A DNA stretch of 64,000 nt, from assembly GCA_015680685.1 (NCBI GenBank), contig MNCI01001360.1:202240-266239 (forward strand). Reading direction: 5' to 3'. A model generated the notes under the pieces. The model worked only from the letters and a program-made list of their open reading frames with translations, was not told where the DNA came from and made no database searches. Position 1 is the stretch's first letter. The number at the start of each line of letters is the position of its first letter. Shown piece by piece: positions 2,387 to 42,780 of the stretch. The position numbers and the translations under genes were made by a program. The stretch is from Gnetum montanum (Eukaryota > Plantae > Gnetophyta).

Positions 2387-5300
2387 TCCTACTAGAGCAG
2401 GTTCACTCTAATAATTAATTCAACGCACTAAATCCAGATATTATGCAAAGACAACTTTTTGCTAGACAACAAGAAAATTAGCTATCTTCAATTAATTTAA
2501 TTAGAAGATTACAACAGGGTTCACACAACCCACAAACATCCAAAATCCTATCACTCAACCAATATTGCAGAGCATGAGGCTCTCAACCACACAATGGCTG
2601 TTCTCAATGCAAGACACAACCAATAGAAATCTCTCCCACAACGCTGAGACTGAGATCTCAACTCACAAGTGAGATACAAAAAAATAGAACACATAGACCA
2701 ACACACCACAAGCTGATCTTGGAGCTGCAATCACCAATTGAACTCACCCAATGTACTCACTCAATCGCTCTTGCTCAGCTCTCTACTCTCAAGAGCGTTT
2801 TCTCTCACTCTCCTACATAGATACACTCTCTTCTCTCATGGATGGATACATACATAATTATAGAGATCCAAAACCCTATGAAGCTTTCTATTTGCCTTCC
2901 TAGATGTTTCCCACAAGGATCTAAAGTTTTTTGGATGTTTCCCAATTGAAACACCACATTGGAGCTTTTTCCTTTGCCATCTCAGACATCTCTAGCTTTG
3001 TTGGGATGTCTACTATGAAAACCCAACTCTTGGGTGAGATGTCTACTGTTTTTGGTAGATGTCTCATCTAGTCCTGAGATGTCTACACTTCCAGACGTCT
3101 AACTTTTTGGTGAGACGTCTAACCTGTAAATGCCAAAAATAAAAATGCTCGTTTTGATGCCTAGAACCTCCGAATGTCTCCAAACAAGTCCCCATAGATC
3201 CTAGAATCCCCTAGACTCATCAAAATGAGTCCAAAATAACTTAAAACATGCCAAAACATCTAAGAATCATCATCAACAAAATCAACACAAGAAGACACAA
3301 AAACAAAACACACTCATCCAAGTCTTCTTCAAGCATGAAACCTACAAAAACAACTTGTAGGACAAAGCACAAGGGAATCAAAAGACGTGTTCCTACACCA
3401 GCTCTCCCATCCTTCAAAAAGTGATCTCATGTGAACAAGGGAGTAAGGGTTGAAGTGATCCCCCACTCAACAAGCTTGGTCTCATGGATCCATATAACAT
3501 CACCAGCAAATCGATCCTCCCAATGGATCAAGTATTCATGCCTCTTGACTCCCGGAGTGCCAGAAGCTTTCCTTCGCTTGAGTACGACTACCTTCCTCTC
3601 CACCAAAGACTTGGACTAATCAATAGCCCCCTTCAACTCATCGATGCTACCTTGTATGGCCTCCTCATTGATTGGTCCATGATAGTGCACAAGATCTGAA
3701 ACATTATGACACAAAACACATATCAACATCGTTTGGTAAATCAATCTCAAAACCATTATCATTAATTTTAGCCTTGATTTTGAAAGGCCCCATCTTCATA
3801 GCCTTCAATTTGAACAAGTTAACACCTCTTAATTGCTTCTTCTTCAAGTGCACCCAAACCAAGTCACCAACAGCAAAATTAGGCTTCCACTTGCCCTCAT
3901 TCCTCTTGAGGACTCTCTCTTTAAGCTTCTTCTCAAGATTTAGTTTTACTTATGCATGGAGATCCCTCATCTCTTGCACAAAATCAACACTAAGTTAAGC
4001 TTTACCATCAAAGCTCTTCAAAGTGTCCACATCTTTGGACAAAACCCATAATTCACCTCAAATGGGCTTTTGTCAATAGCAACATGAAAAGCATTATTAT
4101 ACGAGAATTCAGCATGAGACAAGTTTTCCCACTTGTTTGGCTGTCCATCACATAAACATCTCAATATGTTCAGCAAGGATTTGTTCATCACCTCCGTTTG
4201 GCCATCAAATTATGGATGATATGCACTAGAAAACTTCAACTTTGTCCTAAAATCTTCAAAGGGGACCTCTAAAAATGACTTGTGAACTTGGAGTCTTTGT
4301 CACTAACAATATTCAAAGGAATACCATGCAACTTCACAACATGCTAGAAAAATAAATTTGCAACATGAGAAGCATCACTCACCTTCTTGCATGGAATAAA
4401 ATGTGCCATCTTAAAGAACTTATCCACAACAACAAAAATTGCATCATTCCCACTCTTGGTCTTTGGAATACCACTCACAAAGCCCATTGATACACTTTCC
4501 CGTGGACCTTTGGGAATTGGCAAAGGCATATAGTGTCCATCCACACCTTTACCTCTTTTGAACTTCTAACATGTCAAGCACTTTTTCACAAATTTCAAAA
4601 CTTCTATTGCCATACCAAGTCAAGAATAGTGCCTACCCACAAGTTCCAATGTTTTATCCCTACCCATGTAACCTGCCATGCCACTACAATGCTTTTCAAA
4701 CAGAATCTTTTTCCTAAAATCACAATTAGAAACACATACCTTGCAATTATTGAATAACAGTTCATCTTGAATATAATAGTCCCTCTATTGGTCTATCCTA
4801 TTCATCAACGACTCTTTGAAGCTCCTCCAAACCTACCCAAAATCAATATCATGCTCTTACAAAGAAGCAAAATCACTCATACCTTCCACATGAGGTACGC
4901 TGAAATTCACCGCATGCACCCTGGATAATGCATCAAGCACCACATTGGCTTTCCCACTTTTGTGCTTCAACACAAACTTGAGCTCCTGTAACTGTGCAAC
5001 CCACTTCATGTGCTTTGCACTCAACTTCTTTTGGGAGGATAGAAATTGAAGTGCTTTGTGGTCCATCATCAAAGTGAATTCCTTAAGCAACAAGTAATGC
5101 CTCCAATGCTTGATTACTTGAAGAATAGCATACAACTCCTCATATACACTATATTTTTGCCTTGACTCATTCAAATTTTCAGAAAAAAAAAAGCAACATG
5201 CCTACCTTCTTGTGAAAGTACCCCACCAACGGCAAGTCCACTTGCATCTACCTCCACCTGAAAAAGCTTCTAAAAAATGGGAATTGCAAGCACCAGTTCA

Positions 5301-8300
5301 CTCATCATCTTTGCTTTCAACAAGTCAAAGTTCCCTAGTTTCATTATCCCACCTAAATTCTTTATTTTTCTTCAACAAAGCAAACATAGGCCATGAAATA
5401 CCACTAACATTTTTTATGAACCATTTATAAAAACCTGCTGAACAAAGGAATGATCTTACCTCCCCAACATTCTTAGGAGATGGCCAATCCCTTATAGCCT
5501 TCACCTTGGTAGCTTTCATCCAAATCTGGTTTTTAGAAACCACATGACCCAAATATGTGATTTCCCTCTTGAAGAAATGACTTTTCTTCATGTTGATCAC
5601 CAATTGTGCCTCCTCCAACTTAAGGAACACCATCCTCAAGTGATCCAAGTGCTCTTCCTCATTAGAGCTATACACCAAAATATCGTCAAAAAAGACAATA
5701 TGGCACTTACAAATCAAGTCTTTCAATACATCATGCATCAACCTCATGAATGTGGCAGGTGCATTCCTAAACCCAAATGGCATCACCAACCACTCAAACA
5801 ATCCATACAGTGTTTCAAAAGATGTCTTCCACCCATCACCAGGCCTAATTTTGATCTGATGGTAACCATTCTTCAAATCAATTTTGCTAAAAATCTCTAC
5901 ATTGGAATGGACATCAAGGCTATCATTCATCCTTGGAATAGGAAAACTGTACCTCACTGTTATGCTATTCACTACCCTAGAATCAATGTACATCCTCCAT
6001 TCATAGTTGTCCTTCTTTGGCACTAGCATTGCTAGAACTCACAACGTGACATGACTTTGCAATTCAGCCCTCTGATTTGGTGCCATCCAATAAGCTCTCT
6101 TGTTTGGAATGGTAACACCAAGAATGAAGTCAATCTGATGTTGTACATTCCTCATCGGTGGTAGTCCATCCAATTCCCCCTTAAACACCTTGGGAAATTT
6201 CTCCTTCAAGCCGAGCATACCTATGGGAAGTTCAACTTGCACATCATGGTTAGTAACAATTGTTGTCATAACAACAAAACCAAAACCGGTTTAATTGTGT
6301 TCCTTAATATATTCCCTCTCTCTTAGAAGGATTAAGGAAGCATTAAGTGAGCTTTGCTACCTCACTTGTTCAGCTGTCATAGGAATCAAATCATGGATTC
6401 CATCAAGTCTAACAACACTCCACACATTTTTTGCTCCATCAAACTAAGCACCATTGTCAAAATTCCAAGATCCACCAAGAATTACATCAGCACAATATAT
6501 TGGAAGCACATCACATTTCACAACATCATGAAAACTTCCAATTTTAAATTTCAAGGTACATTTTTCCCTCACCTATTGGGAAAAATCTTTAGACAACCAA
6601 TGCACCTTATAGGGTCTTAGATGAGGATTAGTTACCAAACCCAATCTAGCAACTACCCTAGAAGAAATAACATTTTCTTGGGCTCCCCCATTAATCAAAA
6701 CATGAATTCATTTCCCACTAAGCAAATAACTAGCCCCAATCCGAAACAACAATTTCCTATCAAGATGATCTCCTCTATTGACATTTCCCATGAATGCACA
6801 TGAATTTAATTTAGAAACATCCTCTATCTTTGGAGCATTAGAGATACCTCTCTAAAGAGCTTGGCTTGATGTCTCCTCCACCTCCATGATTTGCACATCT
6901 TTGCCCTTGGCTGCCTTGTAAAGCAGGCATTCCCATTGCTTATGTCCACATTCTCCACATTTGAAGCAATATAGTTTTGATGAGCTGCTACCTTGACCCT
7001 TGCCTCCCTTGCCTTGGTCCTTGTTGGCTTTACCCTTCTCATCAACTCTTTTAGTCTTCTTGTCTTGGCTGCCCTCCTTGTCTTCAGATTTATACTTGGA
7101 TCCTTTATCAGATCTAGATCCCTTCTCCTTCCCCTTTGAGGTTTGTTTGCTCCTATTTCCGAATCCACCTAATTTCTTCTCAGCTTTAAGTGCCAAATCA
7201 TAAGCCTTATCAAGAGTTTGTGGCTCCTAAAAGGACAACTCTTGTTGGTACGCCATTTTGAGACCTCCTAAAAAGATTGAAGTGTGCTCATACTCCTCCC
7301 AATTTACCTTAGCTTGATGGAATAGATTACAAAACTCGATGTAGAATTCTTTGACATCCTTGTCACCTTGCCTTAGGAATTTCAACTTCATAATGGTTTC
7401 TTGTCTTTGATGAGACTATTCAAATTTCCTTTTTAACTTGTATTTCATCATATCCTAATATCTGATAGGTTGACCATTTCATCTTTCATAACCTTGGGAC
7501 TCCTTTTCCCACCAAGTAGAAGCCATACCTTCTAATCTAGATTCAGCAATAGGTACCCTCAAGTTATTCGATACCTCTTCCAACAGAAAATGCTTCTCAA
7601 GTGCCTTCAGCCAACTTGCAAAAGCATTGGTGCCATCTACACCATTGAAAGTCTTCACCTCTACATATGGTAGTCTTGAAGCATTTCTGAACGCTCTAGC
7701 AAGTCTTGCCTCATCTTCGTCATCAAGCTTGCTTGAAGAAGTATTGAACACCATTGGAGCCCTTGGAGTTCTCATTTGAGGAATAGGATTCCCTCCCATT
7801 GGAATCCTTGGCTGATGGTTTCCTACACTCTCATAGTTGGATTGACCTTCCTCTTCATCCACTCCATCTCCACTTGGTTATGAAACTTCTTCATCTAGAT
7901 GTACATGCTCTTCACCTCTGTGTGTCGGAATATGGCTAGGACTGACATGTCTGTCCACCTTTGCATTGATTTCATCCAATCGAGCAACCATCATCTAAAA
8001 GGCAAACTTCATGCTCTCCATGTCCCAATTCAGAGCTTGCACCTATCTCTTCTTGGGTGCCATCTAAAATTGACAAAATCCTCAACCAAAATCCAAGCAA
8101 CAATAAAACTAGGCTCCGATACCAATAACGCTAGAGCAGGTTCACTCCAATAATTAAATCACATTCAATGCACTAAATCCAAATATTATGCAAAGACAAA
8201 ATTATTCGCTAGAAAACAAGAAAACTAGCTATCTTCAATTAATTTATTAGAAGATTACAACAAGATTCACAAAACCCACAAGCATCCAAAACCTATCACA

Positions 8301-9099
8301 CTCAACTGATATTGTAGAGCACGAGGCTCTACAACCACACAATGGCTATTCTCAATGCAAGCCACAACCAATAGAAATCTCTCCCACAATGTTGGGATTG
8401 AGATCTCAACTCACAAACCAATACACCACAAGCTGATCTTGGAGCTGCAATTACCAATTGCACTCACCCAATGTGCTCACCCAATCTCTCTTACTTAGCT
8501 CTCCACTCTCAAGAGTGTTTTCTCTCACTCTCCTGCATGGAGGCACTCTCCTCACTCATGAACGGATACATAATTATAGAGATCCAAAATCCTAGGAAGC
8601 TTTCTATTGCCTTCCTAGATGTTTCTCACAAGGATCTAGAGTCTTTCAAATGTTTCCCAATCGAAATGTCATGTTAGAGCTTTTTCCTTCACCATCTTAC
8701 ACATCTCTAGCTTTGTTGGGACATCTACTGTGAAAACCTAGCTCTCAGGTGAGACATCTACTATGTTTGATAGACATCTCATCTAATCCTGAGACATCTA
8801 CACTTCTGGTGAGACGTCTATCCTATAAGTGCCAAAAATAAAAATGTTCATTTTGATGTGTGGAACCTCCAGATGCGTCCAAACAAGTCCCCATAGACCC
8901 TAGAACCCCCTAAACTCATCAAAATGAGTCCAAAACACCTCGAAACATGCCAAAACATCCAAGAATCATCATCAACAAAATCAACACAAGAAGACACATA
9001 AAAACAGGACACACTCGTCCAGGTCTTCTTCAAGCACAAAACCTACAAAAACAACTTGTAGGACAAAAGTACAAAGGAATCGGAAAAGGTGTTCCTATA
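2387..9099 (-). mobile_element. Ty3/Gypsy LTR retrotransposon, full structure, decayed
   Basis: LTRs at ~2387-3397 and ~8126-9099. Met PBS (plus strand GGCTCCGATACCA, ~8112-8124). PPT (plus strand CTCTCCCATCCTTC) next to 3397. Domain order gag-PR-RT-RH-IN. TSD not clearly preserved. Confidence 0.93.
3560..7862 (-). pseudogene. Gypsy gag-pol, disrupted
   Basis: Zinc knuckle CFKCGECGHKQWEC; RT motifs FSKIDLKNGYHQIKI, VMPFGFRNAPATF and FFDDILVYS; RNase H ELYAILQVIKHWRHYL and DHKAL; integrase [15 protein letters not shown]. Multiple stops and frameshifts. Confidence 0.93.
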
Positions 9100-9755
9100 C
9101 ATTTTGCATTTTGTCTATGTATATATACATTATGCATCAAGTTGAGTTTGAGACAATCAAAACCATCTTAAGGACCAGCGATCATACAGTCCTAGATGTC
9201 CTCTACACCACCATGATTAGTGGTTTAGAGATATAAAGCACAAAAAAGTAAGCAGATATTAAAATAAGATGAACCATCACAATTCCTCAAAAGACCTGGT
9301 CAGATACTATGGATGTGCTTATTAGCAACAATGCCCATGACCTAATTATGCATCACCATGCTCTAGAAAATAAGTTCTTGGAATATGAAGCCACAATTGA
9401 GCTCTTTAACTCTACTATCAAGAAGGATATTCCATATAAATACATCTACAATTCTTCAAGCTGGGTGGATTTAATAAATTGCAGCAATAAAATTTTGAAG
9501 TCCAAGATCATGTGATGGTAGAGTTATAGAAACTGTTCTCAAAGTCACTGTCATCTCTTCAAACAATAAAATACTTCTCTTGTTGATATATACATACTTT
9601 TATCCCACTCCTTATATGCATGGTATGTCAATAGAGAAAAACCTCCATAAGTTGCAATCCTCCCAATGTGACACATTAGCATGGCTGGATGAGTTAAATA
9701 AGAGGATCCAAGATTTAGAACTCCATAGTTCATCTAATAGTTGGGAGACGAGTGG

Positions 9756-11006
9756 ATGGACAAGGAACAGCAGGCAAGCGCCAAAGCGCAGCAATAGCAA
9801 GCAAGCACCAAAGCGCAGCAACAGCCGACGAACATAGGAGAGGAGAGTCCGACGAACGTAGGGGCTGATTTTTAGGCGAACACGGGGGCGGGCAAAGGCG
9901 ATGGGGAGAACTCGGTCTAGGCTACACAAGACCATAGGGTTGCGAGCGTTGGATGGGGGTATCGAGGCACAATCCTGGGCCGACCACACCCTGCACCTCT
10001 GAATCAACAAGCCCCCAACAAAGGGAGTCCGCACGATGCAACGAAGCCTCATTGGCTGTTTCGTTTCCAGGGGTGCTCGCCCGCAGATGGAGTTAATCCG
10101 TGAGTGGGTGCAAGAACACTGGAAGGTTGGCCAAGTGGAAGTCCAGAGTCTATCCAAGGATTTGCTTTTGTTCATCTTTCTATCCCAGTAGGCTAGGGAC
10201 TCGGTGTTGCTAGGGGGACCGTGGTTTTACGAGGCTCAAGGGCTAGCTTTAACTCTATGGCGCCTGGGGGCGCACCGCGAGATAGACCTGTTGACCAGGG
10301 CCCTAGTGTGGATGAGGATTTCCAGGATCCCATGGGAGATGTGAAACCTAGAGTTCCTGGAGAAGGTGGCAGGTTTCTTTGGGGAGTTCATTGCCTTTGA
10401 TAGCGTCACACACTCAATGGCACGAATGGGCTTCGCCCATTTCTGCGTTTGGCGAAGGCTATTAGATAAGGACCTCATCCAGGAAATCATTTTGGAGCTG
10501 CCAGGCAGGGAGGAATGCCTCCAGGTTGAGTTTGAGAACCTGGAGGTTGAGCTAGGCCTTGAACAAAAAACGAAGGCTCGAGAGGGCAAGGGAGAAGGAT
10601 CTGATTACTGTGGGAAACCCAGTCACCAGGAGGAGGATTGCCGATTTTGGAGGACACAGCCAATGCGACCAAGCCAAGCAGATGTTTGAGGATGGGGACT
10701 AGGTCACAATGGGCCGACTACACCCATCGCCAGACCAGCCGCCCCCCCAAAAAACCCCCAAACACCCCCNNNNNNNNNNNNNNNNNNNNNNNNNNNNNNN
10801 NNNNNNNNNNNNNNNNNNNNCCATTGGAGCAAGAACCCACACCCAAGGACTTGGGATGTTGCCCAATAGTGCGAGAGGGGGAGGGTCACCCCGAACGCCC
10901 AAGTGAGAACCGGTCCAAAGCTAGACAAGCTCAACGGAATATTGATTTGGGGTTACAGCAAACCCTCCGGGAGGTCTCCCGGCGCCGCTCATCCGAGCAT
11001 ACATGA
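9756..11006 (+). pseudogene. LINE ORF1 (DUF4283-like plus zinc knuckle), disrupted
   Basis: LLFIF...RDSVLLGGPWFY...LALTLW...VWMRISRIPW, then a decayed knuckle xDYCGKPSHQEEDC. Contains stops, frameshifts and an N gap. Confidence 0.85.
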
Positions 11007-14000
11007 AGATTTTCAACTAGAATTGTAGGGGACAGGGTACACCCTATAAAAGAAACACCCTACGTAGAATTGTCCAGGATGAAGAATGTGACATTGTTTA
11101 TCTCCAAGAAACCAAGTTGCAGGCGATGGAATCTCACCATCTCCTTTGGGATGGTTGGAAAACCCACATGCACCCCTGCATGGGTCAGGCAGGAGGTCTT
11201 GCTATCTTGGCTCGCTATGACATGATGCTGGTTGACACCTCACAATGGACCATGACCATCCATGTCCCCTCCCAAGGGATTTGGCTAACCAACTTCTATG
11301 GGGCGCAGAATTGGGAACAGAGGCTATAGGATATGGAATGCATGGTGATGCTGGTGCTAGACCACCGGGCCTAGCTAATCATTGGGGACTTCAACTAGCG
11401 CTTGCATTCGTGGGAAAAATCCAGTGGGGCCACCCCCCGAGCGCACGGGAATTTCAGGATTTCCTGACGGTCCACTAGCTAGTGGATCTGCCCATTGGGA
11501 ACTGCCAGTTCACCTGGAGCAACAGGAGGAAAGGCCCAGACCATGTCCTTTACCAAATTGATCGGGTCTGCATCAATTCCGACCTCCTCTAATTTGCCGC
11601 GCAGGTTACGGGACAGGAAAGGGTCGTTTCGGATCATCAATCCCTGGTTTGTTCGCTCGAGTTGGAAAGGTCCCGAACCCCACAACTGTTTCGCTTTGAG
11701 GCAACCTGGTTGTCTAAGCTGTGGTTGAGGCCATTAGTTGAGGACATTTGGGCGGATTACCGACTAGGCCAAGGAGACCCCAAGAACTTCCTTAAGGATG
11801 GTTTGCTTCGCCTGAAATGGGCCATCGGAGCCCTACCAATGGAGGACAAATTCTCTTTTAGGACGGGTCACAAGGTGCTCCGGGATAAACTTATTCAGAT
11901 CCAAACCAGACAGGAGGCTAGGGAGGACCTACATGAAGAAGAGCAGAACATTCTACAGCAACTTCAAGGCCTTGACCTAGAAGAGGAGACATACTGGAAA
12001 CAAAGGTCACAGGCCAGATGGCTCCGAAAAGGGGACAGGCAAACAAAATTTTTCTTTGTTGTCGCTAAGACACGAGGATGGGGCCAACCAAGTTGTTTAC
12101 ACACCCGGAATCGGGGGATTATTGATGACCCACAGAGCATCACTAGGGAGCTAACTCAATACTAGGAGAAGATCTGGGCCAAGCGACCCACCAAACCCAT
12201 TTCGGTCCCAATTGCACAGGTGCTAAACAAGGAAGACAGCACACGGTTGCTAACCCCGTTCTCTTGGCAGGAACTCGTCGCCACCATCAATGGCATGCCG
12301 AGAGGGAAGGCGCCTGGTCCAAATGGCTGGAGTCTTGAGTTCTTTCAGACCTTCATGGATATTGTGGGATCCAATATCTTGGACGCCTTCAACCTTATGC
12401 TGGCCTAAAGGAATGTTCGAAGGGAGATCAATTGCTCTTGAATTGTGTGCATCCCGAAGCAAACAGAGGCACACTGCCCAGAACACTTCTATCCTATCAG
12501 GGTCTGCAACGTTTTGATTTGGGTAATCTCCAAATTGATTGTGCATAGGCTTGCGCCACTCATGCCCAAGCTAGTGGGAGTTAATCAAGCAAGGTTTGTG
12601 CAAAGGCCGAACCTTGCAGGATCACGTTCTCCTCATGCAAGAGGTGTTCCACTCTCTTTGGACTATGGGTTTCCTTGGGCTCTGTCTCAAGCTCGATATT
12701 ACCAAGGCGTATGACACACTCAGTTGGGATGCCCCGGCTACCATTATGCAACGGAAGGGTTTTGACCAGGGTTTTATCCAGCTTTGCATCCACATGCAGT
12801 CATCCGCTGGCTTCTCCTTTGACGTGGGGGGGACGGCTGTGGGGCCTCTCCTCGCCTAGGAGGGAGTTACGGCAAGGGGACCCACTTTCGCCCATGTTGT
12901 TCATTATCGCTATGGACCTGATGCAACATTATTGTAGAATGTTGGGGGTTGATGGATTAGCCATTGCGAGGGTAGAATGTCGAGCTAAGCAATATGCGGA
13001 TGACACAATGTTGCTTAGTCGGGCGGGGGTCCCACAAGCACGGTGCATCAACATTGCACTTTCTCGATTAGCAGATGAGTTGGGATTGGAGATTAACAGG
13101 TCTAAATCCTCAGCTCATTTTATTACTGTGGATTATTAAAAACGGGTCATGCAAGTCCTAAACATTCCGCCCAAAACGGTCAAGGATACCTACTTGGGTA
13201 TCCCACTCTTCCAGTGGGGGTGGAGCATGTCTTGGGAGACATTGTTGGAGAAGGTTGAACGGAAGATGGGTCACTGGGCAAATCGTTTCCTAACTCAGAA
13301 GGGACGATTGGTTGTGGCATCGGGGATTCTCAAGGCGATTATCCAATTTGTGGCGGCAGTTGCCACCCCTCCGAACGCCATCATTAACAAGATCAACATG
13401 CAAATCTAGCGTTTCATCTAGAAGGGGGGCAAAGGGGGGAGGAAAAATCCACCTTGTGAGTTGGGAACAGGTTGCACGCCCCTGTAATGCGGGGGGGCTA
13501 GGCATCTCATCGTTCAAGGATGAGTTGATGCTAGGACAGCAATGCTCCGTTTCACACGCCCGCATGGGGAACTGGCCCAATGGATCCACGTTATGAATGT
13601 GAAATATCGTCGTTGGGAGGCAGGGATGCAGGATTCAAGACCCTGCAGATGCTCTGCCACCACACGCGTGTGATGCAGGCATAGGGGTGGTTGGGACTTG
13701 AACTGCGCCGACTGATGGTGGCCAGGTACCCGCAGGTGTTAGGCTAGCAACAAATTTGGATGGGGCAGCTCACCGAGAAGATCAAAATGCTCCTGTGGTT
13801 ATTGCAAAATGACGTGTTACCAGTTCGCACGCTTCTGCGTAGACACGACCTTAATGTGGACAACACCTACCCCCTGTGCAGCGCTACGCCAAAAACGGTT
13901 CAACATTTCATCGCCGATTGCACATACGTGCACGCCACGTGGCACTCAGTTGGTGTGACCCACCCCCAATGCGCCTCACCAACGACTCTCGAACCACGCT

Positions 14001-14039
14001 ACTTTTATGGGTAGCGTGGAAGACAAGAAACCGCACTAT
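11003..14039 (+). pseudogene. LINE ORF2 core: AP endonuclease, reverse transcriptase, zf-RVT
   Basis: MKIFN*NCRG, LQETK, GDFN, FRFEATW, WLRKGDRQTKFF, KAPGPNG, KLDITKAYD, LRQGDPLSPMLF, QYADD, YLGIPL, KIKMLLWLLQNDVLP and WVAWKTRN motifs. Confidence 0.92.
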
Positions 14040-15469
14040 TTCAAGCTGCCCCCGCCCCTGCTGGTGGTTTCCCAAGCTCTTCACGCGTGGAACAAGATCG
14101 AGGTGGCGATGGGTGTCACGCCAACATTCGAACCTGACTACGCCGTGTTCCAGGAGGAAGAACTCTAGCAAATGGTGGAACAGTGCGGCTGGAACAGCCC
14201 CTTGCAGCAGTTGGCTGGTGACCCAGACCTTGCAAATGACGCGTTCTTCTCTAACTGGCACAACGACCGAGGGAGAGAGGTAACCATCACGGAATCTTCA
14301 ATTGCCAGGTGTCTGGGGGCCCAGGCCGCTGGCAAGGTCATTTTGCCTTCCACACGAGGGTTTTAGGACGCAAAACTGTTCTTCAATGGGCCGGTGCCAC
14401 GCACGCAAAGCAGACAAGTGCCCAGATCCTCCTTGCCCCAAATTTGGGCCCAAGCAGCAGATCTGGTGGACAGATTTTTTGTCTAGTCTAGCAACAACTC
14501 CAAGCTCCAAGGCATCCACTTTGCCTTCCTTCGTTGCCTGAAGTTGGGACGTCGGGTTAACTTACTCGATTTTTTCTGGCGGCCCTACAACTTCAAAGAC
14601 AAGGCCATCATTCGAGGCTCATCCTGGCCTTATGGCAGGGGGCAGAGAGGGGGCAAAACTCGTAGAACACCCCCCCCCCCCCCTGGCCCATTGTCTTCGG
14701 CCAACCGGGAGAACCTCTAGACCCTACTTGCAATGACTTACACGCGGAAACGGCATAGCCAGCGTGAACAGCGCCCCCCAACCAATACTGCAACACCAGA
14801 GTCGTCTCCGCCTAAGACCTCCGAGCGCAATGCGAACTGGGACGAGGAGTTGCAGCAGGCTGCACAAAAGGCCGCATCCATGGCACGCGAGGCTGAGCGG
14901 CAAGAATGGGAGGCAAAATGGCAAGAATCCCTCGTGCAAGCACGGGCTGAGTTGGAGGCCCAGTTTAGAGAAAGGGAGCAAGAAAGGGTGAGGCAACAAA
15001 CCCTCCTAGCCGATGCAGCCCAAGCCCAGCTGGTGGATGAGATCCAGGCCCAAGTGCGGAAAGAATTGATGCAGGAGGAAACCACTCGAAGGGAGCACGA
15101 GAAGGCTGAACGGGCACAACTTGAACGAGAACAGAAGGAGGAGGCCCAGCAGCAAAGCCAACTAGACTGGGCACACGAACACAGCGCCCACCAATGGCTT
15201 ACAGGTGGACGGTGCCCATACCTCATCCTGGGCATCAATTGTGACGGCTCTTGGGGGGGCTCAAACACCATATCCGCCGAACCTCAACGCACTTCCACCC
15301 AAATACGGGGACATCAACGGTAGATAGGAATAGACAGGAGTCGGCCATGCAAGGAATCCAGCAGGCCGCTAGTTTTGTGGACACGAAACTCCATCAAAAC
15401 ACGCTAGATATTCTTCATGAGCTAGAATGCCCACACTGTGGCTGCCATCGGCTGCCAACAAACCCCTAG
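14040..15469 (+). pseudogene. LINE ORF2 C-terminal extension: PMD/Transposase_32-like domain, coiled coil, J-domain-like, CxxC
   Basis: One frame runs 14040-15250, interrupted only by TAG stops at 14166, 14364, 14484 and 14718. A one-base slip in the G run at 15253-15259 continues it to the stop at 15469. Homologous to the 3' end of the second LINE. Confidence 0.75.
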
Positions 15470-18400
15470 CAGGGTCGCTGCTTTCAACCTGCGAGGGTTG
15501 TTGTTGCCCCCCCTCCCCCCCCCCCCCCCCCTTTTTTCGCCCCTTGCCCCCCCCCCCCCACCCAAAACTCATTTTTTAGCTTAGAGTGGCTACGACTAGA
15601 CTAATGCGAAGTTTGGCATGTCGATTTTGGGGTATTACCCCACCACACATGGGCCATTGTTGATGACCCGCTGTTTGTAATCTCTTGTACTATATTTTTT
15701 CAGCAATACAATCCCGACTATTTCCTCAAAAAGAAAAATAGTTCAATAATAGAGTAGTTTGAGCTCTACAAATCAAAGACCATAGCCCTGCTGGAGAAAG
15801 GAAAGCAAGCTATAAAAGAGTTGTCGCAACTAAAACAATTGAAAGAATTTCACCTACAATGCTTGATTCTATGTGATTGCAAATGATGAAGGAACAAGCG
15901 AAGGAAGCTAAGGAGCTGTCTACGATGACCACCTAAAAGTAAAATGCAACTGCAAAAAAAAAAAAGTTTGTGGTTCAAATTTGGACATCAATCAAACTAT
16001 TAGATATATCCTCTACTCAAGATACAATCATTCATTTCTTAACATAAGAAGAAAAATGACTTATGAAAGGTTACGATGGTCCATAAGTAGTCATAACCAT
16101 TCACAAGATACAAAAAAGCACAGGATCACACCTTGTAGATATCGGGATTAATTTTGAGATATCTGTACAATAAGGAAAAGCCCTCATGAGCCAAAAACAA
16201 AATATGGTGGTGGTTTGTAAGACCACATAAAAGGAAAAGGCAGACTTATAGCATTGCCAAAGAAAGAAGCAACACCAGTAAAACATAAGTTCTTACAAAC
16301 TTAGTATAGACTAGTCTAAAGTAATAGCAAGCCTAAAAATGATGTTAGGATATATTAGAATCAGAACCAAGGCTAGTTGTAGGCTATCTACAATAGCTTA
16401 TGATCAATACTAATCTACAATGCCAATCAACATCACTTAAAGGATTCGTAAGTTGGCAGTAAGACTTTTGATACTCATAATTGTAGAAAGGATTACAAAG
16501 TACAGTTATCTTATAGATCAAAGTTACAATGACTCCCTTGGCTCATTATACAGATCCTGGTATATTAGAGTTGCCCAAGAAAGTGTAAAACCAAACTCTA
16601 ATGAAAACAGAGCTTTGACGTTGATGTCAAGGCTAAAGAAAATCTTCTCAAAGAGAAGTAGAATCAGTTGGTGTAATTGGATGCTAAGAAAAAAAAAGAC
16701 ACATGCAAGGACCACAGAATTGGCACAACTGTCAGCAAATATGTCTGCAATTGGTGAATATGTAAGTCTGCGATTGGTGAATATGTAAGTGACCTTCTCA
16801 ATTTAATTGTTCAAAATAACTTGCTCATCACGAATCATCCTCTCTCCATGGACAAGAATGTATTGGAGCAAGTAACCACTACCAAATTAAAGTCTCTGGT
16901 GCTTCCCTCTTCTTCTTTTAACCCTCCTTCCTCCACAGTTGAAACTGCGATGATTTTATCAAAAATACATAAGCCTCCTTCACAAACCACAGAGAAGGTA
17001 AATGTTGAAGATGATCCTTCCCTCCGTGAGTTTGATAGTATGTTAAATATTGAGCTCTCCTAAACGTAAATAAAAATTAAAACAGGCTTCTTTATTTTCA
17101 AATGATGGTTTTAGAATTTTTGTGGCTTCAAATTTATGTTCTATCTTAAAAGTTAAATATTATCTTGGCCATGCTATCTTTTAAAGAAATTTATCTCCAT
17201 TTAGTTTTTTATCACAATCTTCTTCTTACCATTTCAAGAAATCTTAATAAAAAGATAGGATAATGAGACTGTCGGTATACTATAATATAATAAGTTATAG
17301 CTTTATTGTTAAAAGAATATTGGTTTTGTTATATACACGGTTAGCCCAAATAAAAAACAGGAATGGAGTATTTAATAAAAGGTATGCCATACTGGGCATT
17401 ACAAACTTCTCCACAACCGTGAAGTAAAACTAAATTATTCTTCAAACTATAAGTACAGTTTAAGGGGAAGTAAAGTCTATTTAATATCCTTTAAATTTGT
17501 TTTAAATTTTCAAAAAACGATAAAATGTAAATCCACAAAAAAGTGACCGATAATAAAGCTTTGATAAGTTGTTTAATGAAAGTTCACCTGCATTGAGTTT
17601 AAAGGGAAGTGTTAAGTGATGTTGTGATTATCAATCTCAACGTGTATGTTATTAAAAAGGATGTATGATTGTTATGTTCTTAAAAAGGATGTATAATTGC
17701 TATGGTTAAAATGAAGATATGATTAGTTAGCTATCCTGTGAAAGGGTGTGTGTCTATCAAATTAAAGACATGTCTCTTGGATTTCTAAAGCAATAAAATG
17801 GATGGCACTATCATGTTCTACATACACAGACTCAACATACAAGAGACACATTACAACCGTCGGTTACAAAGTACATGGTTACTGTTATACTCTACCGTTC
17901 CGACCTGACTATTTCAGTTCATATTCTGTATTCAATACACTATATTTTACTCAGTTCTTAACTTTACGTTGTGTCTGACAAAATTGTGGGTACTTGTCAT
18001 TCACAGTTTGGTGTTTAATGTTTTGTATTTGTGTGTCCATAAGCTATGAAGCTTAATGTGCACCCTCGATCATTCTAAGTCTTTATTGTTCGTCATATGA
18101 CTTATGTCTCATCTATGTATTGCAACCGTGGATTGCCTTACGGTTATATATCTGTGGTTTTTTCATCTGTTACATTTGTAATATTCTGCTCAATAAATTT
18201 GCTTTGTTTACTTCCTGTGGACCTTACATTCCAACAATTCCAATATCACTTTAAAATTGTGAATGAGTATTTTGTACCTCTTTATTTTTTATCAATTGCA
18301 AAACTATACAAAGTTGGAAGAAATGCACAATAAGTACTTCAAACATTTTCTCCCAATGGTGAATTTCACACCATCCTATGATCCTTTGATGGCTTCTCCA

Positions 18401-20369
18401 TAAGCCACAAGTTTTCTGATGGCAAAATCGAATGACTTCCAATATTAGAGAGAGTGTTTTGCACGATCTTTAAGGATGCATCAAATAACATGGTCGTGTG
18501 TCTCAAGTGTAGGCTGTCCCATATTAATTATAATAGTGCAAAACATATGTTGGAGAACGAGCGAAGAACAGAGATCTTTCTCAAGCCTCAGCCGAATTAT
18601 GTGTCTCTTTCTATCTTCAAAACTTCATTTTGGAGAAACTGCAAAATGTATTCAATTTTCATAGATCTAAGAAACTCGCTGGTCAGAATCTTCAAGGCTT
18701 ATTTGAAAAGGATCAGCATCTGTCAACAACATTGAATAATTTTGTTTGGGAACATCTTGTGTTTTTCAAGGGCTTTGTGACCCTTGTTACAGTTCTTACT
18801 CGCTCCATACCAAACTGACTCTTCTCCTACACATCTATGCTTTGGTAGTATTTGTGCTATATCAAACTTCATTCAGAAGAGTTTTATATGTTGTTGAAAA
18901 AACAAAACCATTGTGTAGTTCAAGGATGACGCTGCAATGAAAGAGGAGTTCTGTTGCCAAGTGGAAAAACCCAACTATTGGCAACATCAAAACGGAGGAT
19001 GCAAGGGAGCTTACAATTATGTGGGAAAGATATGAGTGCCAAGCACATGAAAAGTCTAGCAGAGCCCTATGATGAAGTATGACACTTGAGTCTTGCCAAA
19101 GAAGACGCAGAGGTGTATAATGCAAGTTATCATCTAGATGAAATTCCCATCGCAATAAGTTAGGTGGTTATTGCAGCACAGTAATACCAATTTATTGCAA
19201 CGGAATATGAAAAGGAGTATCGCCTGCAAAAGACGTATAGGTAACAGATGACAATAGCAACAAAAAAAGCTAGGAAAAGGTCAAGGAAGCAGTCTCGCAG
19301 TACAGCATTGGGCTTCTACAAAATCCACTGCACAATATTTATGTGGTGCAAAAGATGACCCTGCTTGATATAAAAGGTATCATTTATTATACAGTATTGT
19401 AGCAGACCATTGCATGTGTTGGTACTCCAGAAACTGCTTCCACAGAATATATTTCAAAGCTTGCTTACAAAAGTCTGAAAAACGAGAAGAAAGAAGTTTA
19501 GGCATCCTCATCCAAAGTGTTTCAGAATATGGCCAACTGGGAGAAGCTTGTCAAGAGGTGTGGCAAGAAGGATCTAAGAAGACCCCTCCAGAAACTTGAT
19601 GAAGAGACCAACCTGTCCTCCACAACAATCAAAGTTTGCAGAAGCAAGTGGTCAAACAAGGACAGGAGCTAGTGGTGGGTTGTGCAAAGTTACAGAAGGC
19701 TGTTACTCAGCAAAATGAACTCCAAGAGAAGGGGAAGCATCTCAAGGAGTAACTTTAACATAAACAGCCACCCACACTGCTGAGTTGCAAAAGTTGCAGG
19801 AGGAGCTAATGCTCAAAGAAAAGATTTGGATAGCATTCCTCCACAACAATCTGAACCAACAAGTTTACTCAGTTCATTCTTCTTCCCACCATCTTCCTAC
19901 ACGATCCCTTGAAGTCTATGCTCTATAGCAAGGAAGAAGAAGATTAACCTCTGCAACCGACTTGATGGCTAAGTAATATGCGCCCCTGCATGAACTAAAG
20001 TTGTAATATTGGTTTTTTTATTTAATAATTCCATAATGAATAAACGGTTTCTTGTGGTTGGTTCTAATATGCTTCGTCAAACTTGCATTCCAAAATAAAG
20101 GGGAGAAGTCCATACTGTGACAACATTGTGATTAACTTTGTAACTAGCTGCTATAGTAATTTATTCTTTTATATAAGTCTCTTTCCTTAACCTACTTCCA
20201 CTTTGAGAACACATTTTGTCAATTACAGGGAAATGTTGACATTATGAAAAGAGAATTTTGTAATATAAAAAATAATTAGCCAAACATGTTCCCGATTTCT
20301 CGGTAACAAAGTGGTATTGACCCCTTAACAAATAGACGTATTCCAATGAAGCAAACATTACGATGGTTG

Positions 20370-23300
20370 ACTTTCAGAAAAGAAAAAGCCCAAGGAATGA
20401 ACAAAGACAAGTACAGAAGACAAGGAGATATGAAATCAAGAATCCTCCAGACCTCTTCACCACAAAAGGTACATCCACTACAAAGAGATAGACAGGAGTG
20501 CTAAAACTAGGGAAGTAGCTCAGCGACACTTCACCAGAACCAGATATGATTAGCACAGTAGAAATTAGGGTTCAAAAAAGGCCCTACTAATTGGCTAGAG
20601 TTGAACTAATTAGTATTTGTAGTGTTCAAGACTACAAAGGTTTTAGCCACCCATCCACAATGATCCATAAGCAGTTGTTTACACCAATGTGAAAGTCGGT
20701 TCAACTAAAGCTGCAAAATTTAACTTAGCTGATCATCTTCAAGTTCATTTTTGATGGTCGCCTAATGCAAGTCACTTCATCATTGCTCTTCCTTGGCCAT
20801 CTCTTCAAGGCACAATTCTTCCTACTCCACCAAGTGTCGGTATTCATGTTCACGTGCCTAGCAGTTAGCCTCCTACAGGGCCATTTCTCCGCCCAAGCCC
20901 TAGCAACCACTTCTTCAATGGCTCTTGCCAAGTCGGCTTCAAATTTGTCTTGGAGTTCCCAACAGATATTTTCAGCATGCACCAAGGATGTATCAGGTGA
21001 GGAAGGCTCCGAACCAGCAATCACCCCTGGCACTCCCCATGCATCTCATCCCCTAGAACCTCTAGTGCATCAAACACTGGAGAGAAGGGCATATCTACCA
21101 ACGGCCATTGCCACCCATAGATTGCCATGCACAACATGTAACAGGCAAGGGGTAGCACCACTGGAACGCCGCATTCTAGAGGGCCAAGATAGCCCCAAAT
21201 GACAGCCCCATCATTGCCAATGCAACAAAGCAAGGAAGAACTTTGGGAGGTTAAGCCTACAGCCCAACCCCAAGCATTTGAGGAACATAAAGAGTGCACC
21301 TTGCAACTTCCAAACGTTGCCAGATTGCATGAAAAAATAGTCAATCAACTCCATGGCATCTTGCCACAACGGTGGCAAGGCCAACTTGGGGACATGTCTA
21401 CTCCCTGTTTTGGGAATGGGCCTTCAAAGAAATCCTCCACGTCCTGTAAGCCTCTTCCGGTGGGGAGAACCACCTCCTCATCCACTAGAACCCCGAGATA
21501 CTAAGCCAAAACCTCCTCGATTAGCATAAAATACACACAATGTTAGGTCGTACAGTCAACCCTCCAATTCTAATAGAATAAGCTATCAACAAGGTCAAGG
21601 TCCCCCACCAACAAAGGGAGAAGGGCAACCCACCCAACACACATAAGCAAACCCCAAAGCACCTGGTTACCCTGGTACCCCATGCATGTTGGCTCATAGG
21701 TAGGTGTAATGCCCATCGTGACAGTAGCCTCCCACCACAACCAAACACCGAGGGCAGCAACCTGCACAGAAGGAGGAAGAGGCTCAAAGCTAAAAATCAA
21801 AGCGTTACATGCCCACCACAGACACTAGAGGACCACGAAAGTTGTGGAGTCCTCATCAAGCTTGACCAGCGGCTAGAGTGTAGCAGACCACCAAACCTCT
21901 GTGGCAAAATGGCATTGATATGCAAAGTGGTACAACATTTCAAGGTCTAACACACAGAGGATAGATGTTGTCGATATTAATGCCTTGCGTCATAAGCAAA
22001 ACGCACACCAACAAAGCAACATGAGATAGAAACCAAAGGAAGGCTTTTATTTTTTTTGATAGCCAGCCCGCCCAAATCACCTTCCATCCCTTGACCATGG
22101 GATATTTCTTTTTGATGATATTGTGTAGCTGCACATCCTGCATTTCCCCTTGGGACACCACTTGCACATGTCTACAAAGGGTACACCAAATATGCAAGTC
22201 CTGAGTGCCTGTTGTCTCATGACTGGTATTTGTTTATCATGATGCAAATCCATTGGGCAGAGTTGTCAATATGTTGCATTAGCCAGTTGGCGAGGAGTTG
22301 GTATCCCATGTTGATAACATCCTGGAATTTCAAGATACCCAAATCCCCAACAAACTTGGGCCTCACCCCAATCTCCTAGCAAATGAGATGCATACATTCA
22401 CCCCCTATACCCCCCAACCAAATAAAATTCCTTACTAACTGATCAACTTTGTCAATAATGCCCTTCGGGGATGAGCCAACAGAAGCAATAAATCTAGCAA
22501 TGGTCAATAGGACAGAGGTAGCAAGAACAATTTTTTTCTTCCTAGTTAAAAAGCACATTGTCTAATGCCCAATTCGTTGTTAGAGCTTTTGGGAGCAATT
22601 TAGACCACGACATCATTCTATTTGAAGCATACATTGGCAGGCACATATAGTGAGTCCATCGGCATTCCCAAGAGGATGCCAAGCACCTGACAAACCTACC
22701 CCTTCACTCGACCGTTAGTATTAAGGAAGTGGAGCGTGGACTTCCCTTTGTTGAGTTCAAGTCCAACCTATTTGGCCATCCTGCAAAGCAATCTATTCAC
22801 CACTTGGGCCTAGGGAACCGCAACACGAGTGAAGAAGATAGTATCATCAACGCGGTGTTATGTCAAGTAGTGTACCCCAATGATCTCCATCCCCCTAAAC
22901 CCTTCCATTTTACAGTATAAGTCCATCATATCCATTGTGATAATAAATAGGTAGGGGGATAAGGGGATCCCCTTGTCATAACCCTAGACCAGGGGAGGAG
23001 AACCCCCAAAGCTTCACATCAATATCCAATGAGTACGCCCTAGAAGCTTGTAAGTTGATACATAAATTGATGAACTTCAAGTAAAGCCCTTTTCTAAGTA
23101 CAATTTCTCTAAGGGTGTTCCAACTAACAATATCATAGGCTTTCCTGATGTCAAGTTTGATGCACATTCTCAGATATTTAGCTACCTGGACAAAGTGCAG
23201 GATCTCCTACAACAGGATGACCTAGTCCTAAATATATCTTCCTTTAATAAACCCGGCTTGTTGCACACCCACAAAAGTTGGCATTGGTAGTGCCATCCTC

Positions 23301-23905
23301 CATACAATTTTTGTGAAAAGGTGAAGCAGGGTATGGCAAACCCCAATGGGCCTGAACTAGGATGGTTTGGTGGGGTTCGTGACTTTGGAAATAAGCACAA
23401 TGCAAGAGCAATTAATCTCATGTCAAACCTGCTACCAATGGAGCATCAAGTTGAATGTGTCTAAAATATTCCTTCCCAGGATGTCATCATACTCCCTAAA
23501 GAATTCTGTAGGCCATCCATCAGGCCCAGGACCTCTAGCAGCTTTGAGCAATGCCATAGCCCACTCCAATTCAAACAAAGTAAAAGGTACAAGCATCTTT
23601 CAGTTCTCTACCTCTCCCACCACCGTTCAGATTTGGGCAGAAACTAGAAGAGTTTCCTTTCTACACAAGATATCCGCCCAATATGCATGCATAGCCTGAG
23701 CAGTATCCTTGGTCTTGTGAAAGATGTTTCCCTTGTGGATTAGGCAATGAATTCTTTTGGATTCGTTCTTAGCTTTTGCTGTCGTGAAGAAAAATCGGGT
23801 ATTCCTGTCCCCCTCCTTCAACCAACAAACCCTCGAGCACTACCTCTAGTATAGTTCCTCCTCCACAAACAACTCCTAGAGCTCCATCAACACCTCGTGC
23901 TATTC
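20370..23905 (-). mobile_element. 5'-truncated L1-clade LINE related to the first, with the same C-terminal extension
   Basis: KEGDRNTRFFFTTAK, IKLDIRKAYD, QGDPLSP and KKIKAFLWFL motifs, followed by the MGITPTYEP...GDLDL...KLQG extension and a coiled coil. The 3' boundary is approximate; no clear poly(A) or TSD. Confidence 0.88.
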
Positions 23906-34800: not shown

Positions 34801-36725
34801 ATGAATCTACCATCAATGTATATAAGNNNNNNNNNNNNNNNNNNNNNNNNNNNNNNNNNNNNNNNNNNNNNATGTGACTACTACATCCATCTGCCACCAT
34901 TGTACATTGTTCTTGAATCAGANACTATGAAACTGAAATCAACTTCTTTGTAACTTCAGGAACATGTCTAACGTTATCTATTGTCACCTTTGGCATCCTT
35001 GCTTGTTGCAGACTTATACTTCCAATTCCAAGAACTTTTAAAGCTTTTCCATTAGCAGCATATACAAAACTAGATTCAACTTTATGATAAGATGCAAAAC
35101 AAGACTTATCTGGACAAATATGAAAGGAGGCACCTGAGTCAATCAACCAGATGTCACTGCTACATCCATCTGCCACCATTGTACATTGTTCTTGAATCAG
35201 AAAACTAACGTTTTCATCAGCTACATGTACCTCTGATGTTCCTTCTTCTGACTTCTTCTCCTTTCCTTTATTTTTCTGTGCTTTCCATGCAAAGCAATCC
35301 TTCTTCAAATGACCTTTCTTCTTGTAGTACCAGCACTCTTAAGTTTGAGTTCTGCCATGTGATACTCTTCTGTTCATGCTTCTCCCCCTACTTGGGAAAC
35401 GTCTCCTACTTCTACCTCTTTCCTCTACTACATGAACATTTCCAGATCTAGAAGACTCATCTACTCTTCCGTCTGAATCCTGAAGAGTAGACACAACCTA
35501 TTTAAATGTCATAGATGAAACACTCATAGAAATAGTAATAGATGTCACAATTGCAGACTAGGAATCAGGTAAGGAGTCTAACAAAGCATAGGATTTAACT
35601 AAATCTGGAATAACAATTTTATATTCCTCCAACTTATTCAGATATCTCATCATCTCATCCAAATGATCTTGAAAAGACACATCATATCTCTTCTTGCATC
35701 TGAAAAATTTTTGATAAATGTGGAAGGTATTCAAACCTGATACTTTGTCAAACCTGTTCTTCAACGTTTGCCACAGATCATGCGGATCCATCAACGTTTG
35801 CCACAGATCATGCGGATCCATATCAGGTTTGATTGAGGCCAAAATCCCATTGCTTAGGGTTGGATGAATGAAAGATGATGCCCTAGTCTTAATTTTCCTC
35901 CAATCAGCATTTGACATTCTTGCTGGTTGAGAGGGTTCTAGGGCCTCTTGGCACTCCTTTTGTGCTAAAACAACCTTCATCAAAATGCTCCAAATGTTCT
36001 AGTTCCTTCCTACCAATCTTTCAATTGTTTACAACCTCTCCATCTCTTTAAATCTAGCTCTAATACCAGTTGTTATAATCAGATCTGAAAACAATTAGAC
36101 CTGAAAACACACTACAAATGCTCTAGAGAAATTATTAGAACCCTACAGATCTGAATAAATCATTAGAGCCAAAATATTGTGTTGTAGCAGGTCAACAAAC
36201 ACTATAAATCACTCTCAAAAACGTTCTAAACTCTAGCAAACATTTTCTGTGATAACAAAATGAAAGCAGAATGAAAACAGTAAAAATAGCACAAGAACAC
36301 AGAGAGTTATGTGGTTCGGGCCCTTTTTACCCTACTTCCACAACAATGCTGATCTGCCTTCTATTCTTCTCAAATCTTCAGAACACAAGCCGTCCTTGTA
36401 ACTTTTCCAAACACCCAATCTGTTATTCCAATAGATCTAAGATCAACACCAACAAGACTCACGTCTCCAAGGTAAAACCTTGATACAATGCTTTCACTTC
36501 AAAGCACACACTAAAGGCTACCCCAAGCCTTCTATTTATGAAGAAACATGAGGACCAAACCTCAATCCTAATACATGTGGGATAAAACACCAAGCCTCCT
36601 ATTTATGAGGAAACATGAGGACCAAACCCCAATCCTAATACATGTGGGATAAAACACATCCCCACATCAAATGCAACATAAAAGGAAATACAACAATTAA
36701 TGTATTTGTCTTCATTTTTCCAACA
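31855..36725 (-). mobile_element. Ty1/Copia LTR retrotransposon, relatively young
   Basis: Near-identical LTRs at 31855-32493 and 36071-36725; perfect TSD GAGAA; Met PBS; PPT AAGGGGGAG. Motifs WLIDSGAS, WHRRLGH, TDNGGEY, QENGVAERCNRTL, KARLVVKGYAQ, LYGLKQAPRQW, LYVDDML. Confidence 0.96.
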
Positions 36726-40539: not shown

Positions 40540-42780
40540 GCCAAGGCTTGGACGAAATCTAAAGGTCACCTTGATCGACACCTACCTAAAATAAATCTCT
40601 TCTAAGGAGGTCCAAAGTGTCATTCTTCAGGAACTCAACTTTGGCCCATTCTTGGACCTAGCACGAGAGGAGGTTAAGACACAACTGCAAGGATCTCTCA
40701 TGTGGTCCATCCTCACTTCTAGTGGGGAGTGGTACATGAGAGAGACTTATCTCTTTTGGAACAACTAACAGGTGGATGCAACCATGAAAATCAAGGACAT
40801 CAACATGTCCTATTCGGTTGAGGCCATTACAAAGGCCCTCAAGTTGCCTAACACCTAGGCAACCATGGCAAAGATTCCTATATAAGCGGACCCTCAAGTT
40901 GCCTAACACTTGGGCAACCATGGCAAAGATTCCTATATAAGCGGACCCCAACATCAAAAAGGAATGGGTCCAACGTTGCTATGGAGTGAACCATAAGGAG
41001 TACGGTGCACTCACCAAGGCAAAGAGGACCTACTTCAAGATTGCAGCCTATCACCTAAACCCAACGACAATGCCAAGGAAGGTCACTGCCTTCTCTACCC
41101 ATGCATGTGTCACTCTAAGCGAAAAATTCCCTGTCAACCTCCCCCAACTTATCTTCTTTGAAAAAGAAAATGAGCAAGGGAGGAAGACACTCCCCTTTCC
41201 ATGCCTAATCAAAAAACTCTGCAAAAAGGAAGGAATAGCCCATTATGCAAAAGACATGCTTCGTCATGCTCCTGCTACATCTTGGTAGGAGATGATGAAA
41301 GACAAGGTGCCTACCAAGCTACTTGAAAAGTAGCAACCACCACCACCACCTACTGGAGAGACAACGCCAAAGGCTCGTGCAACAATGGAGCACATGAGGA
41401 AGCTTCGTGAGCAACCTTTGCAGCAGCAACAAGGAGAACCAAAGTGGTGGAGAGCCATCAATCTACTAGCCAGCATTAAGCCACCTCAAAGAGGTAACCC
41501 AAACAATCAATTGGCTAGAAGAGACTACGTCGTTGTTTTCGACACAATGGATGCAAGTGCCCGCAAGAACAAATTCGAGCACCCAAGAAGTGACAATGTC
41601 CATCCCTAGACAACAAAAATTCCTAGAGATCTCTAAGAATACTGCTACTTTCTTGATGCGCTTGGAAGAAGGCAAGGGGACAACTATCTTGGTGATGCAA
41701 CACCATGGACAAGAAATAGTGGTAGAGGTGGTGGCCAATCAAGTAGCAAAGGCTCTAAACGCTCCTGTGGCAACTATGCCAAACATTGCTGCACTCAAAG
41801 ACATGCAGGCGTCTACAGGAGCAGGGAGCGGTGAGTGGGAGGCTAAGCATAGCCCAACGTGAGGAAGTGTTGGACCAACTGGTGGGAACCAGGCAACCAC
41901 TTTCGAAAATCTTCGATCTTCTAGAAAAAATCACAGCTACCCAGTCGAGGCTACTAGAGACCAAGGGCAAGCTCATCATTGCAAACACCCAACGTGAGGC
42001 AACCACAACCAAAATCCAACAATAGACTACTGAAGTTGTGGAACTAAGAGCCTGCTTGGCCAATCTTGCCATTTTCAACCAAGCCATTATACAAGATGAA
42101 GCTTTCTTATAGCTTCAAAACAAATTAAAAGAGGCTAAGAATGAGATGGAGATGGCGGTCTTTGATGCATCCTTATTGGAGGCTCTTGCCTTTAACACCG
42201 ATAAGGACTTGTCGCAAGTCCACAAGGAGAACCTAACTCTAACCACAGACATCCACCACCTACGTAATGTTGATGAGCAAAAAGATCAAATGGTCAAATT
42301 TGTGAGACAACAGCAAGAGCAACTTGCTAAGGTGAACATGGATTTGAGGAAGCTGGCAATAGAGAACCATAGTCTCTCAATGAAGGAAGTCCGTGCACTT
42401 CGCTAGAAAATAGCCATTGAGGTAGCCACCTAAAAGAATGAGGCCTTGAAATTTGAACAAGCAAAAAATCATTATAGGGACAAAGTTGGGCTCCTCAAGG
42501 AGGTAAACAAGAAAGAGATTCAATTAGCCAAGGTGAAGATAAACGAGGCCCTCCAACAAAGGGGTGATGTATAGCAACCAATCTTTGATAGATTGAATAC
42601 CTACAACAAAGCTGAGATCCACCTAAAGGATTTGCAAATTGAGGAGATGATAAAGTACATGGAGCTTGCCAACCTCCGTTGCAATAGAATAGCCACAACC
42701 ACTGCCTTAGCCTCAACCACCACTGCCACAAGTGCAGGAGGCTAGAGAAGGTCCTTTAGCACCCTAGGAGCCTCCACCTC
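40540..42780 (+). pseudogene. Athila-type extra ('env-like') ORF: Transposase_32/plant transposon protein-like domain plus long coiled coil
   Basis: MWSILT...YLFWNN...SYSVEAITKALKLP, HLNPTTMPRKVT...FPVNLPQLIF...LPFPCLIKKLC, then heptad-rich segments at 41850-42650. A 55-bp tandem duplication at 40836-40948 breaks the frame. Confidence 0.75.

Follow-up and report, generated by a model that had tools for sequence, protein, structure and literature searches.

Structure of the LINE relics in the window

The window analysed here, 64,000 nucleotides of Gnetum montanum contig MNCI01001360.1, contains two related LINEs. LINE 1 is a degraded L1-type element that occupies positions 9740-15700 of the plus strand, as delimited by composition and domain order, its ends being approximate. 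It stands out by a GC content of about 0.51, against 0.33-0.40 in the surrounding DNA. Its ORF1 relic is of the plant type, with a DUF4283 part at 10192-10341 (PF14111, E 1e-4) and a CCHC knuckle recognised by eye only. It is followed by the relic of an apurinic-type endonuclease at 11021-11326 (PF03372, Exo_endo_phos, E 1.1e-5), by the reverse transcriptase (RT) core at 12585-13136 (PF00078, RVT_1, E 2.1e-9) and by a zf-RVT domain at 13748-14011 (PF13966, E 1.1e-10). Endonuclease, RT and zf-RVT are thus arranged in one direction and in the order of L1-clade plant LINEs, both in LINE 1 and in a third copy of the family, the metagenomic contig L001 described below. An assembly gap (N run) lies at 10770-10820, between the ORF1 relic and the endonuclease, and other N runs of the window are found at 34827-34871 and 63179-63262. 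Near the 3' end of LINE 1, no poly(A) tail is recognised; a C-rich, low-complexity tract is present at 15496-15571 and was omitted as a repeat from read mapping.

Downstream of zf-RVT, LINE 1 encodes a tail domain of about 165 codons at 14103-14600, which is defined by translation and by its alignments to LINE 2 and L001, and which TAG stops interrupt at 14166, 14364 and 14484. In the frame of position 13959, the stop-free pieces are 13959-14165, 14169-14363, 14367-14483 and 14487-14717, each separated from the next by a TAG. The translation then reads into a Gly/Arg- and Pro-rich linker (14601-14717) and, still in the frame of the tail, into a charged, Glu/Gln/Arg/Ala-rich region (14721-15209) that belongs to a 200-aa open stretch (14721-15320) and is probably a coiled coil. 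The last recognisable part is the probable relic of a J-domain at 15210-15451, lying in two frames and identified by motifs colinear with those of the J-domain of L001. The first-pass annotation had placed the conserved domain at 14040-14600. A domain is indeed found there, but conservation extends past 14600, through the coiled coil and the J-domain relic, to about 15451.

LINE 2, on the minus strand at 20067-23905, is a relative of LINE 1 that is degraded and truncated at its 5' end, delimited by a chain of tblastx matches and by translation. Its zf-RVT domain lies at 21943-22233 (PF13966, E 7e-5) and its tail domain at 21214-21716, where three stops occur along with a frameshift near 21411-21420; the corresponding minus-strand pieces are 21824-21573, 21500-21348 and 21423-21214. 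The tail translations given for LINE 1 and LINE 2 in the first-pass annotation are exact on re-reading. A charged region, seen by translation at 20728-21045, is placed after the LINE 2 tail like the coiled coil of LINE 1, to which it has weak similarity without any significant alignment. The end of LINE 2 (20067-20126, minus strand) resembles positions 7440-7502 of L001, that is, the last 20 or so residues before the final stop; this likeness, which is not significant alone (E 0.48), hints at a conserved C-terminus beyond the J-domain. LINE 1 and LINE 2 are dead relics, and no intact copy of the family was seen among LINE 1, LINE 2 and L001, which are all broken.

The tail is conserved as protein between diverged LINEs

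About 170 aa encoded after zf-RVT are colinear between LINE 1 and LINE 2, with 35-53% protein identity, while no DNA identity between the two elements is detected by blastn at a word size of 9. When the elements are compared by tblastx, RT (38-44%) and tail (35-53%) fall into one colinear chain. The best block of the tail, 14391-14576 against 21420-21235, is 53% identical over 62 aa (80 bits), and the summed E value reaches 1e-113 over the complete element, or 5e-32 when the tail is taken by itself. Over the three codon positions, nucleotide identity amounts to 0.59/0.64/0.39 for the tail and 0.53/0.66/0.36 for RT, in blocks selected by protein similarity, a selection that biases both sets of figures alike. 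As the codon-position pattern of the tail is like that of RT, the tail has diverged as coding sequence under an RT-like constraint. These results support the view that the tail is a genuine protein domain of the LINE and that selection once acted on it, and they uphold the initial proposal of protein conservation despite diverged DNA, and hence of past purifying selection.

A third copy, from metagenomes

A search profile made from a three-row alignment of the C-terminal half of the tail (A2) was compared with 1.84 billion representative proteins. It returned one match, an 86-aa fragment from a JGI metagenome (P0001, E 7.8e-4), and no member of the Transposase_32 family (PF20167). A second tail alignment (A4) again returned P0001 and no further protein. 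The contig from which the fragment derives, L001, recurs in identical form in another sample as L002. It holds a complete, AT-rich LINE, with DUF4283 and a knuckle recognised by eye, endonuclease, RT, zf-RVT (4447-4848) and tail (4969-5500). This tail shows 32-41% identity with those of LINE 1 and LINE 2. In L001 the tail shares the reading frame of zf-RVT, stops being the sole breaks. The linkage of the tail to RT in other copies, a check that had been set beforehand, is therefore observed. When a piece of the L001 RT is used as a query in a protein search, four unnamed fragments are returned. Protein databases contain hardly any members of the family, which is consequently invisible to routine annotation. 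The flank of the L001 element (7700-13513) is very AT-rich (0.26-0.30 GC) and contains no recognisable gene.

Beyond its tail, L001 carries one frameshift, about 1.5 kb of charged sequence and then a probable J-domain. The stretch L001:7290-7502 matches positions 36-63 of DnaJ (PF00226) with an E value of 1.6e-4 and a score of 22.1 bits, which is under the cut-off of 27.8 bits because the piece holds half of the domain. No Pfam match is obtained for the J-domain relic of LINE 1 on this broken copy. The characteristic tripeptide is diverged from HPD in L001 and reads HPN in LINE 1 (15296-15304). A His/Cys motif directly after the J-domain is common to LINE 1 (15434-15451) and L001. The order tail, charged region, J-domain is therefore common to LINE 1 and L001, and LINE 2 has the tail and the charged region. 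The charged spacer between tail and J-domain measures about 1.5 kb in L001 (5529-7016) and about 0.5 kb in LINE 1 (14721-15209), indicating a very variable length. In all, the extension after zf-RVT adds about 450 aa to LINE 1; in L001 it measures about 880 aa.

The family in public reads

The 2.1-kb interval 13600-15700 was compared with contigs of three DNA runs from three related organisms. From each run, 3586-4173 contig pieces are placed on this interval, 80-99% alike. With thousands of placed pieces per run, the family is present in high copy number in at least three related organisms. Depth is greater over the tail, the coiled coil and the J region than on the zf-RVT side, and such a rise toward the 3' part is as expected of 5'-truncated LINEs. 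A site of extreme contig depth is seen at 13955-14025 (7600-9600, against a few hundred alongside), with many loose ends at 13984-14041; it corresponds to the conserved end motif of zf-RVT, which numerous other LINE families of this genome apparently have as well.

Letters at individual positions were taken from the best 40 rows of the read table, among which there is none for 14166 or 14484. In these rows, most other copies differ from LINE 1 in the letter at 14364, 14719 and 15322. Most copies therefore lack the stops at 14364, 14718 and 15321, and these three stops are private to LINE 1. At 15302, about 82-87% of the depth in the same best 40 rows, in the three organisms, has the letter that gives the canonical HPD rather than the HPN of LINE 1.

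In an oligo-dT RNA run, 1254 reads of the family are found, equally on both strands. Nearly all of them are less than 90% alike to LINE 1, and one of the 1254 is at least 99% alike. These reads thus come almost entirely from other copies, either transcribed or read through, and are not demonstrably from LINE 1.

Probable continuity of the tail with ORF2

Whether the tail belongs to ORF2 itself can be addressed at one codon, which precedes the tail's first conserved Trp by eight codons and at which LINE 1 has a TAG (14166-14168) and L001 a TGA (5029-5031), whereas LINE 2 has TGG (21657-21659, minus strand). Stops at an equal distance from a conserved Trp in two copies, with a TGG one step from a stop in the third, are what would be seen if tail, coiled coil and J-domain formed a separate downstream frame, an ORF3 or a read-through extension, after an ancestral in-frame stop. 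We consider this arrangement unlikely. An ancestral TGG followed by two G-to-A transitions takes two changes, against at least three from an ancestral stop; since a Trp codon hit twice needs fewer changes, continuity with ORF2 is favoured. At two more LINE 1 stops, 14718 and 15321, a G is read in most copies, among the best 40 rows, and would turn the codon into TGG. Moreover, L001 has no ATG after the stop, and the bases following the stops of LINE 1 and L001 appear unlike the known read-through contexts. The path from zf-RVT to the tail requires frameshifts in LINE 1 and LINE 2, so the evidence for one continuous frame comes from L001, the least broken copy. Judged from these codons, the tail is more likely to have been continuous with ORF2 than to have been a separate ORF.

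A different objection is that the tail could be foreign to the LINE, a fragment of another element or of a host gene adjoining it by nesting or by 3' transduction. Elements of the PF20167 type are present in the window, and transduction of 3' flanks is possible for LINEs. Such an accident would nevertheless have to account for an identical junction, order and spacing in three LINEs without DNA identity, one of them from another, AT-rich source, as well as for an L001 tail that shares the frame of zf-RVT, a constraint equal to that on RT, and the GC-rich composition of LINE 1, which continues across the tail to about 15700. Taken together, these observations leave a foreign origin by juxtaposition very improbable.

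Identity of the tail domain

The first-pass annotation had likened the tail to the Plant Mobile Domain (PMD) and to Transposase_32, and had stated that no RNase H motif (KLNxDG) is present. Each stop-free tail piece of LINE 1, LINE 2 and L001, including an unbroken 105-aa piece of L001, was scanned singly against Pfam, without read-through, and no family is matched at E values up to 10 (the Pfam cut-off of PF20167 being 45 bits). The statement on RNase H is thereby borne out, as no RNase H family is among the matches of any piece.

The window itself offers a point of comparison, as a true Transposase_32 relic lies on the plus strand at 40595-41285 (PF20167, E 5.3e-7, matching 86-176 of the 177 profile positions). 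It belongs to an element other than the LINEs, and its frame is shifted by a 55-bp tandem duplication (97% identical) at 40836-40948. The relic is followed by coiled-coil-like ORFs at 41786-42406 on the plus strand, with weak matches to coiled-coil families only, so that the order of domain and coiled coil is common to the LINEs and to the relic. Alignment gives no significant link between the two. With hhalign, the profile of the C-terminal part of the tail against the relic has an E value of 0.27, and the whole tail domain, with stops replaced by X, a P value of 0.098. The ungapped profile score is equalled by 96-476 of 1000 shuffles, and the motif resemblance seen by eye is thus no better than chance by alignment. 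These tests compare shallow profiles of three or four broken sequences with one broken relic and have little power. A colinear match drawn by eye around a shared V-N-L motif is not the best-scoring diagonal and was dropped. A protein database search returned no homologues of the relic, which has too few shared words.

The ESM Atlas feature search provides a lead. Among the 30 clusters nearest to the query L001:5266-5580, 9 are assigned to PF20167 at 0.90 and 21 are unnamed, without any PMD or RNase H cluster. The match shares 153 of 256 features, with a query recognition of 2260 against a mark of 2300, and is weak by these marks. A 70-aa piece of LINE 2 gives no usable match in the same resource. 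In AlphaFold models, the C-terminal 100-105 aa or so of the tail are all helical, and the N-terminal piece consists of a helix, two short paired strands and a helix, both models being of low confidence (pLDDT 53.5 and 49.9). The best match of a sequence profile search of the PDB, an unrelated antitoxin (E 0.034), was treated as noise.

There is about an even chance that the tail is a real, LINE-encoded orphan domain, without any evolutionary link to Transposase_32 or PMD, which it would resemble by short motifs and by a helical composition like that of plant transposable elements. The empty Pfam scans, the hhalign and shuffle results, the single 86-aa fragment without any PF20167 member from 1.84 billion proteins, and a sharing of ESM features below the level typical for true family members all speak for such an orphan. 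Against it, the lone named family in the ESM neighbourhood is precisely the one proposed beforehand, and it is named nine times; the order of domain and coiled coil matches that of the PF20167 relic of the window; and the low power of the alignment tests reduces the force of their null outcomes. A distant kinship of the tail with Transposase_32 may be put forward as a tentative reading. Kinship with PMD proper is quite improbable. The proposed identity thus keeps a lead on its Transposase_32 side, from the ESM Atlas, and none on its PMD side, while Pfam, hhalign and shuffles lend it no support. Finally, a highly diverged RNase H domain would sit in the position after zf-RVT that this domain takes in RNase H-bearing plant L1s (Smyshlyaev et al., 2013, as cited in PMC5203782). 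It is hardly credible here, as no piece matches the family, the last 100 aa are modelled, at low confidence, entirely as helices where strands would be expected, and no such cluster appears among the ESM neighbours.

Proposed architecture and significance

Our results are best explained, with a probability of roughly 0.7 for the reading as a whole, including its layout and mechanism, by a lineage of plant L1-type LINEs in which ORF2 bears a long addition at its C-terminal end, the tail being the first portion of this extension. The layout would be endonuclease, RT, zf-RVT, a mostly helical tail of about 170 aa, a charged coiled coil that varies in length, a J-domain and, at the C-terminus, a short conserved segment, the extension probably being made as one polypeptide with ORF2. 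The J-domain could recruit host Hsp70 to the LINE ribonucleoprotein, and the coiled coil could multimerise. The tail domain might then act as an adaptor that anchors the module on a partner, which may be nucleic acid, chromatin or the LINE's own proteins. An extension of 450-900 aa under RT-like constraint, present in thousands of copies and with HPD retained, suggests a dependence on the recruitment of host Hsp70.

The tail could have been taken up with its coiled coil from LTR accessory proteins of the Transposase_32 type. That the lineage acquired an LTR-retrotransposon module of this kind, a Transposase_32-like domain with its coiled coil, as a block and joined it to a J-domain, is a possible but rather doubtful scenario.

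The domain set of LINE ORF2 is thought to be narrow and stable, additions being rare (RNase H in plants, a helicase in some insects). If the LTR-retrotransposon module was indeed acquired as a block, the polyprotein would carry its own Hsp70 co-chaperone together with an adaptor domain shared across classes of transposable elements. Retrotransposon classes would then have exchanged a domain, and the element would be the first of the non-LTR type to recruit chaperones. Our literature search returned no report of PMD, PF20167 or a J-domain in LINEs or other non-LTR retrotransposons, and no paper on this family. Should the tail be kin to Transposase_32, it would connect a second class of transposable elements with the accessory proteins of plant LTR elements, which are poorly understood, and would offer a simpler system in which to ask for the function of that domain.

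Comparison with known systems

The family is like plant L1-clade LINEs in having a DUF4283-type ORF1, an apurinic-type endonuclease, RT, zf-RVT and an extra module that closes ORF2. Some of these LINEs carry an added RNase H after zf-RVT, according to the works cited in PMC5203782 (Smyshlyaev et al., 2013; Heitkam et al., 2014), and RNase H is the only added ORF2 domain listed for plants in that review of L1 diversity (PMC5203782). Unlike in the RNase H-bearing elements, the module described here is composed of a domain that is helical in a low-confidence model, a coiled coil and a J-domain.

The accessory proteins known as Transposase_32 (PF20167), which occur in plant LTR retrotransposons, are related to Athila ORF1 (PMC11728184). 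The tail is similar to them in length (the profile has 177 positions) and in being followed by a coiled coil, and theirs is the sole named family among its ESM neighbours. It differs from them by the lack of any HMM or profile-profile match and by its setting, in a non-LTR element, fused after RT and with a J-domain downstream. The Plant Mobile Domain (PF10536), which is found in MAIN/MAIL1 and in Gypsy elements (PMC9289625), is likewise a plant accessory domain borne by transposable elements and has short motifs that resemble the tail by eye; the tail, in contrast, has no Pfam match and no PMD cluster among its ESM neighbours. The two also differ in size. PMD is about twice as long as the tail domain.

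For the J-domain, a parasite-encoded counterpart exists in the large T antigen of polyomaviruses, the HPD motif of which recruits host Hsp70. Unlike in large T antigen, the J-domain is here the last part of an RT polyprotein. The nearest precedent for the architecture as a whole is provided by the insect R1/TRAS LINEs, in which a virus-derived helicase domain is found at the C-terminus of ORF2 (PMC4686597, PMC5563155). The domain, the host kingdom and the presumed source are all different, but in both cases a LINE lineage has gained a foreign C-terminal domain of ORF2 and retained it under selection.
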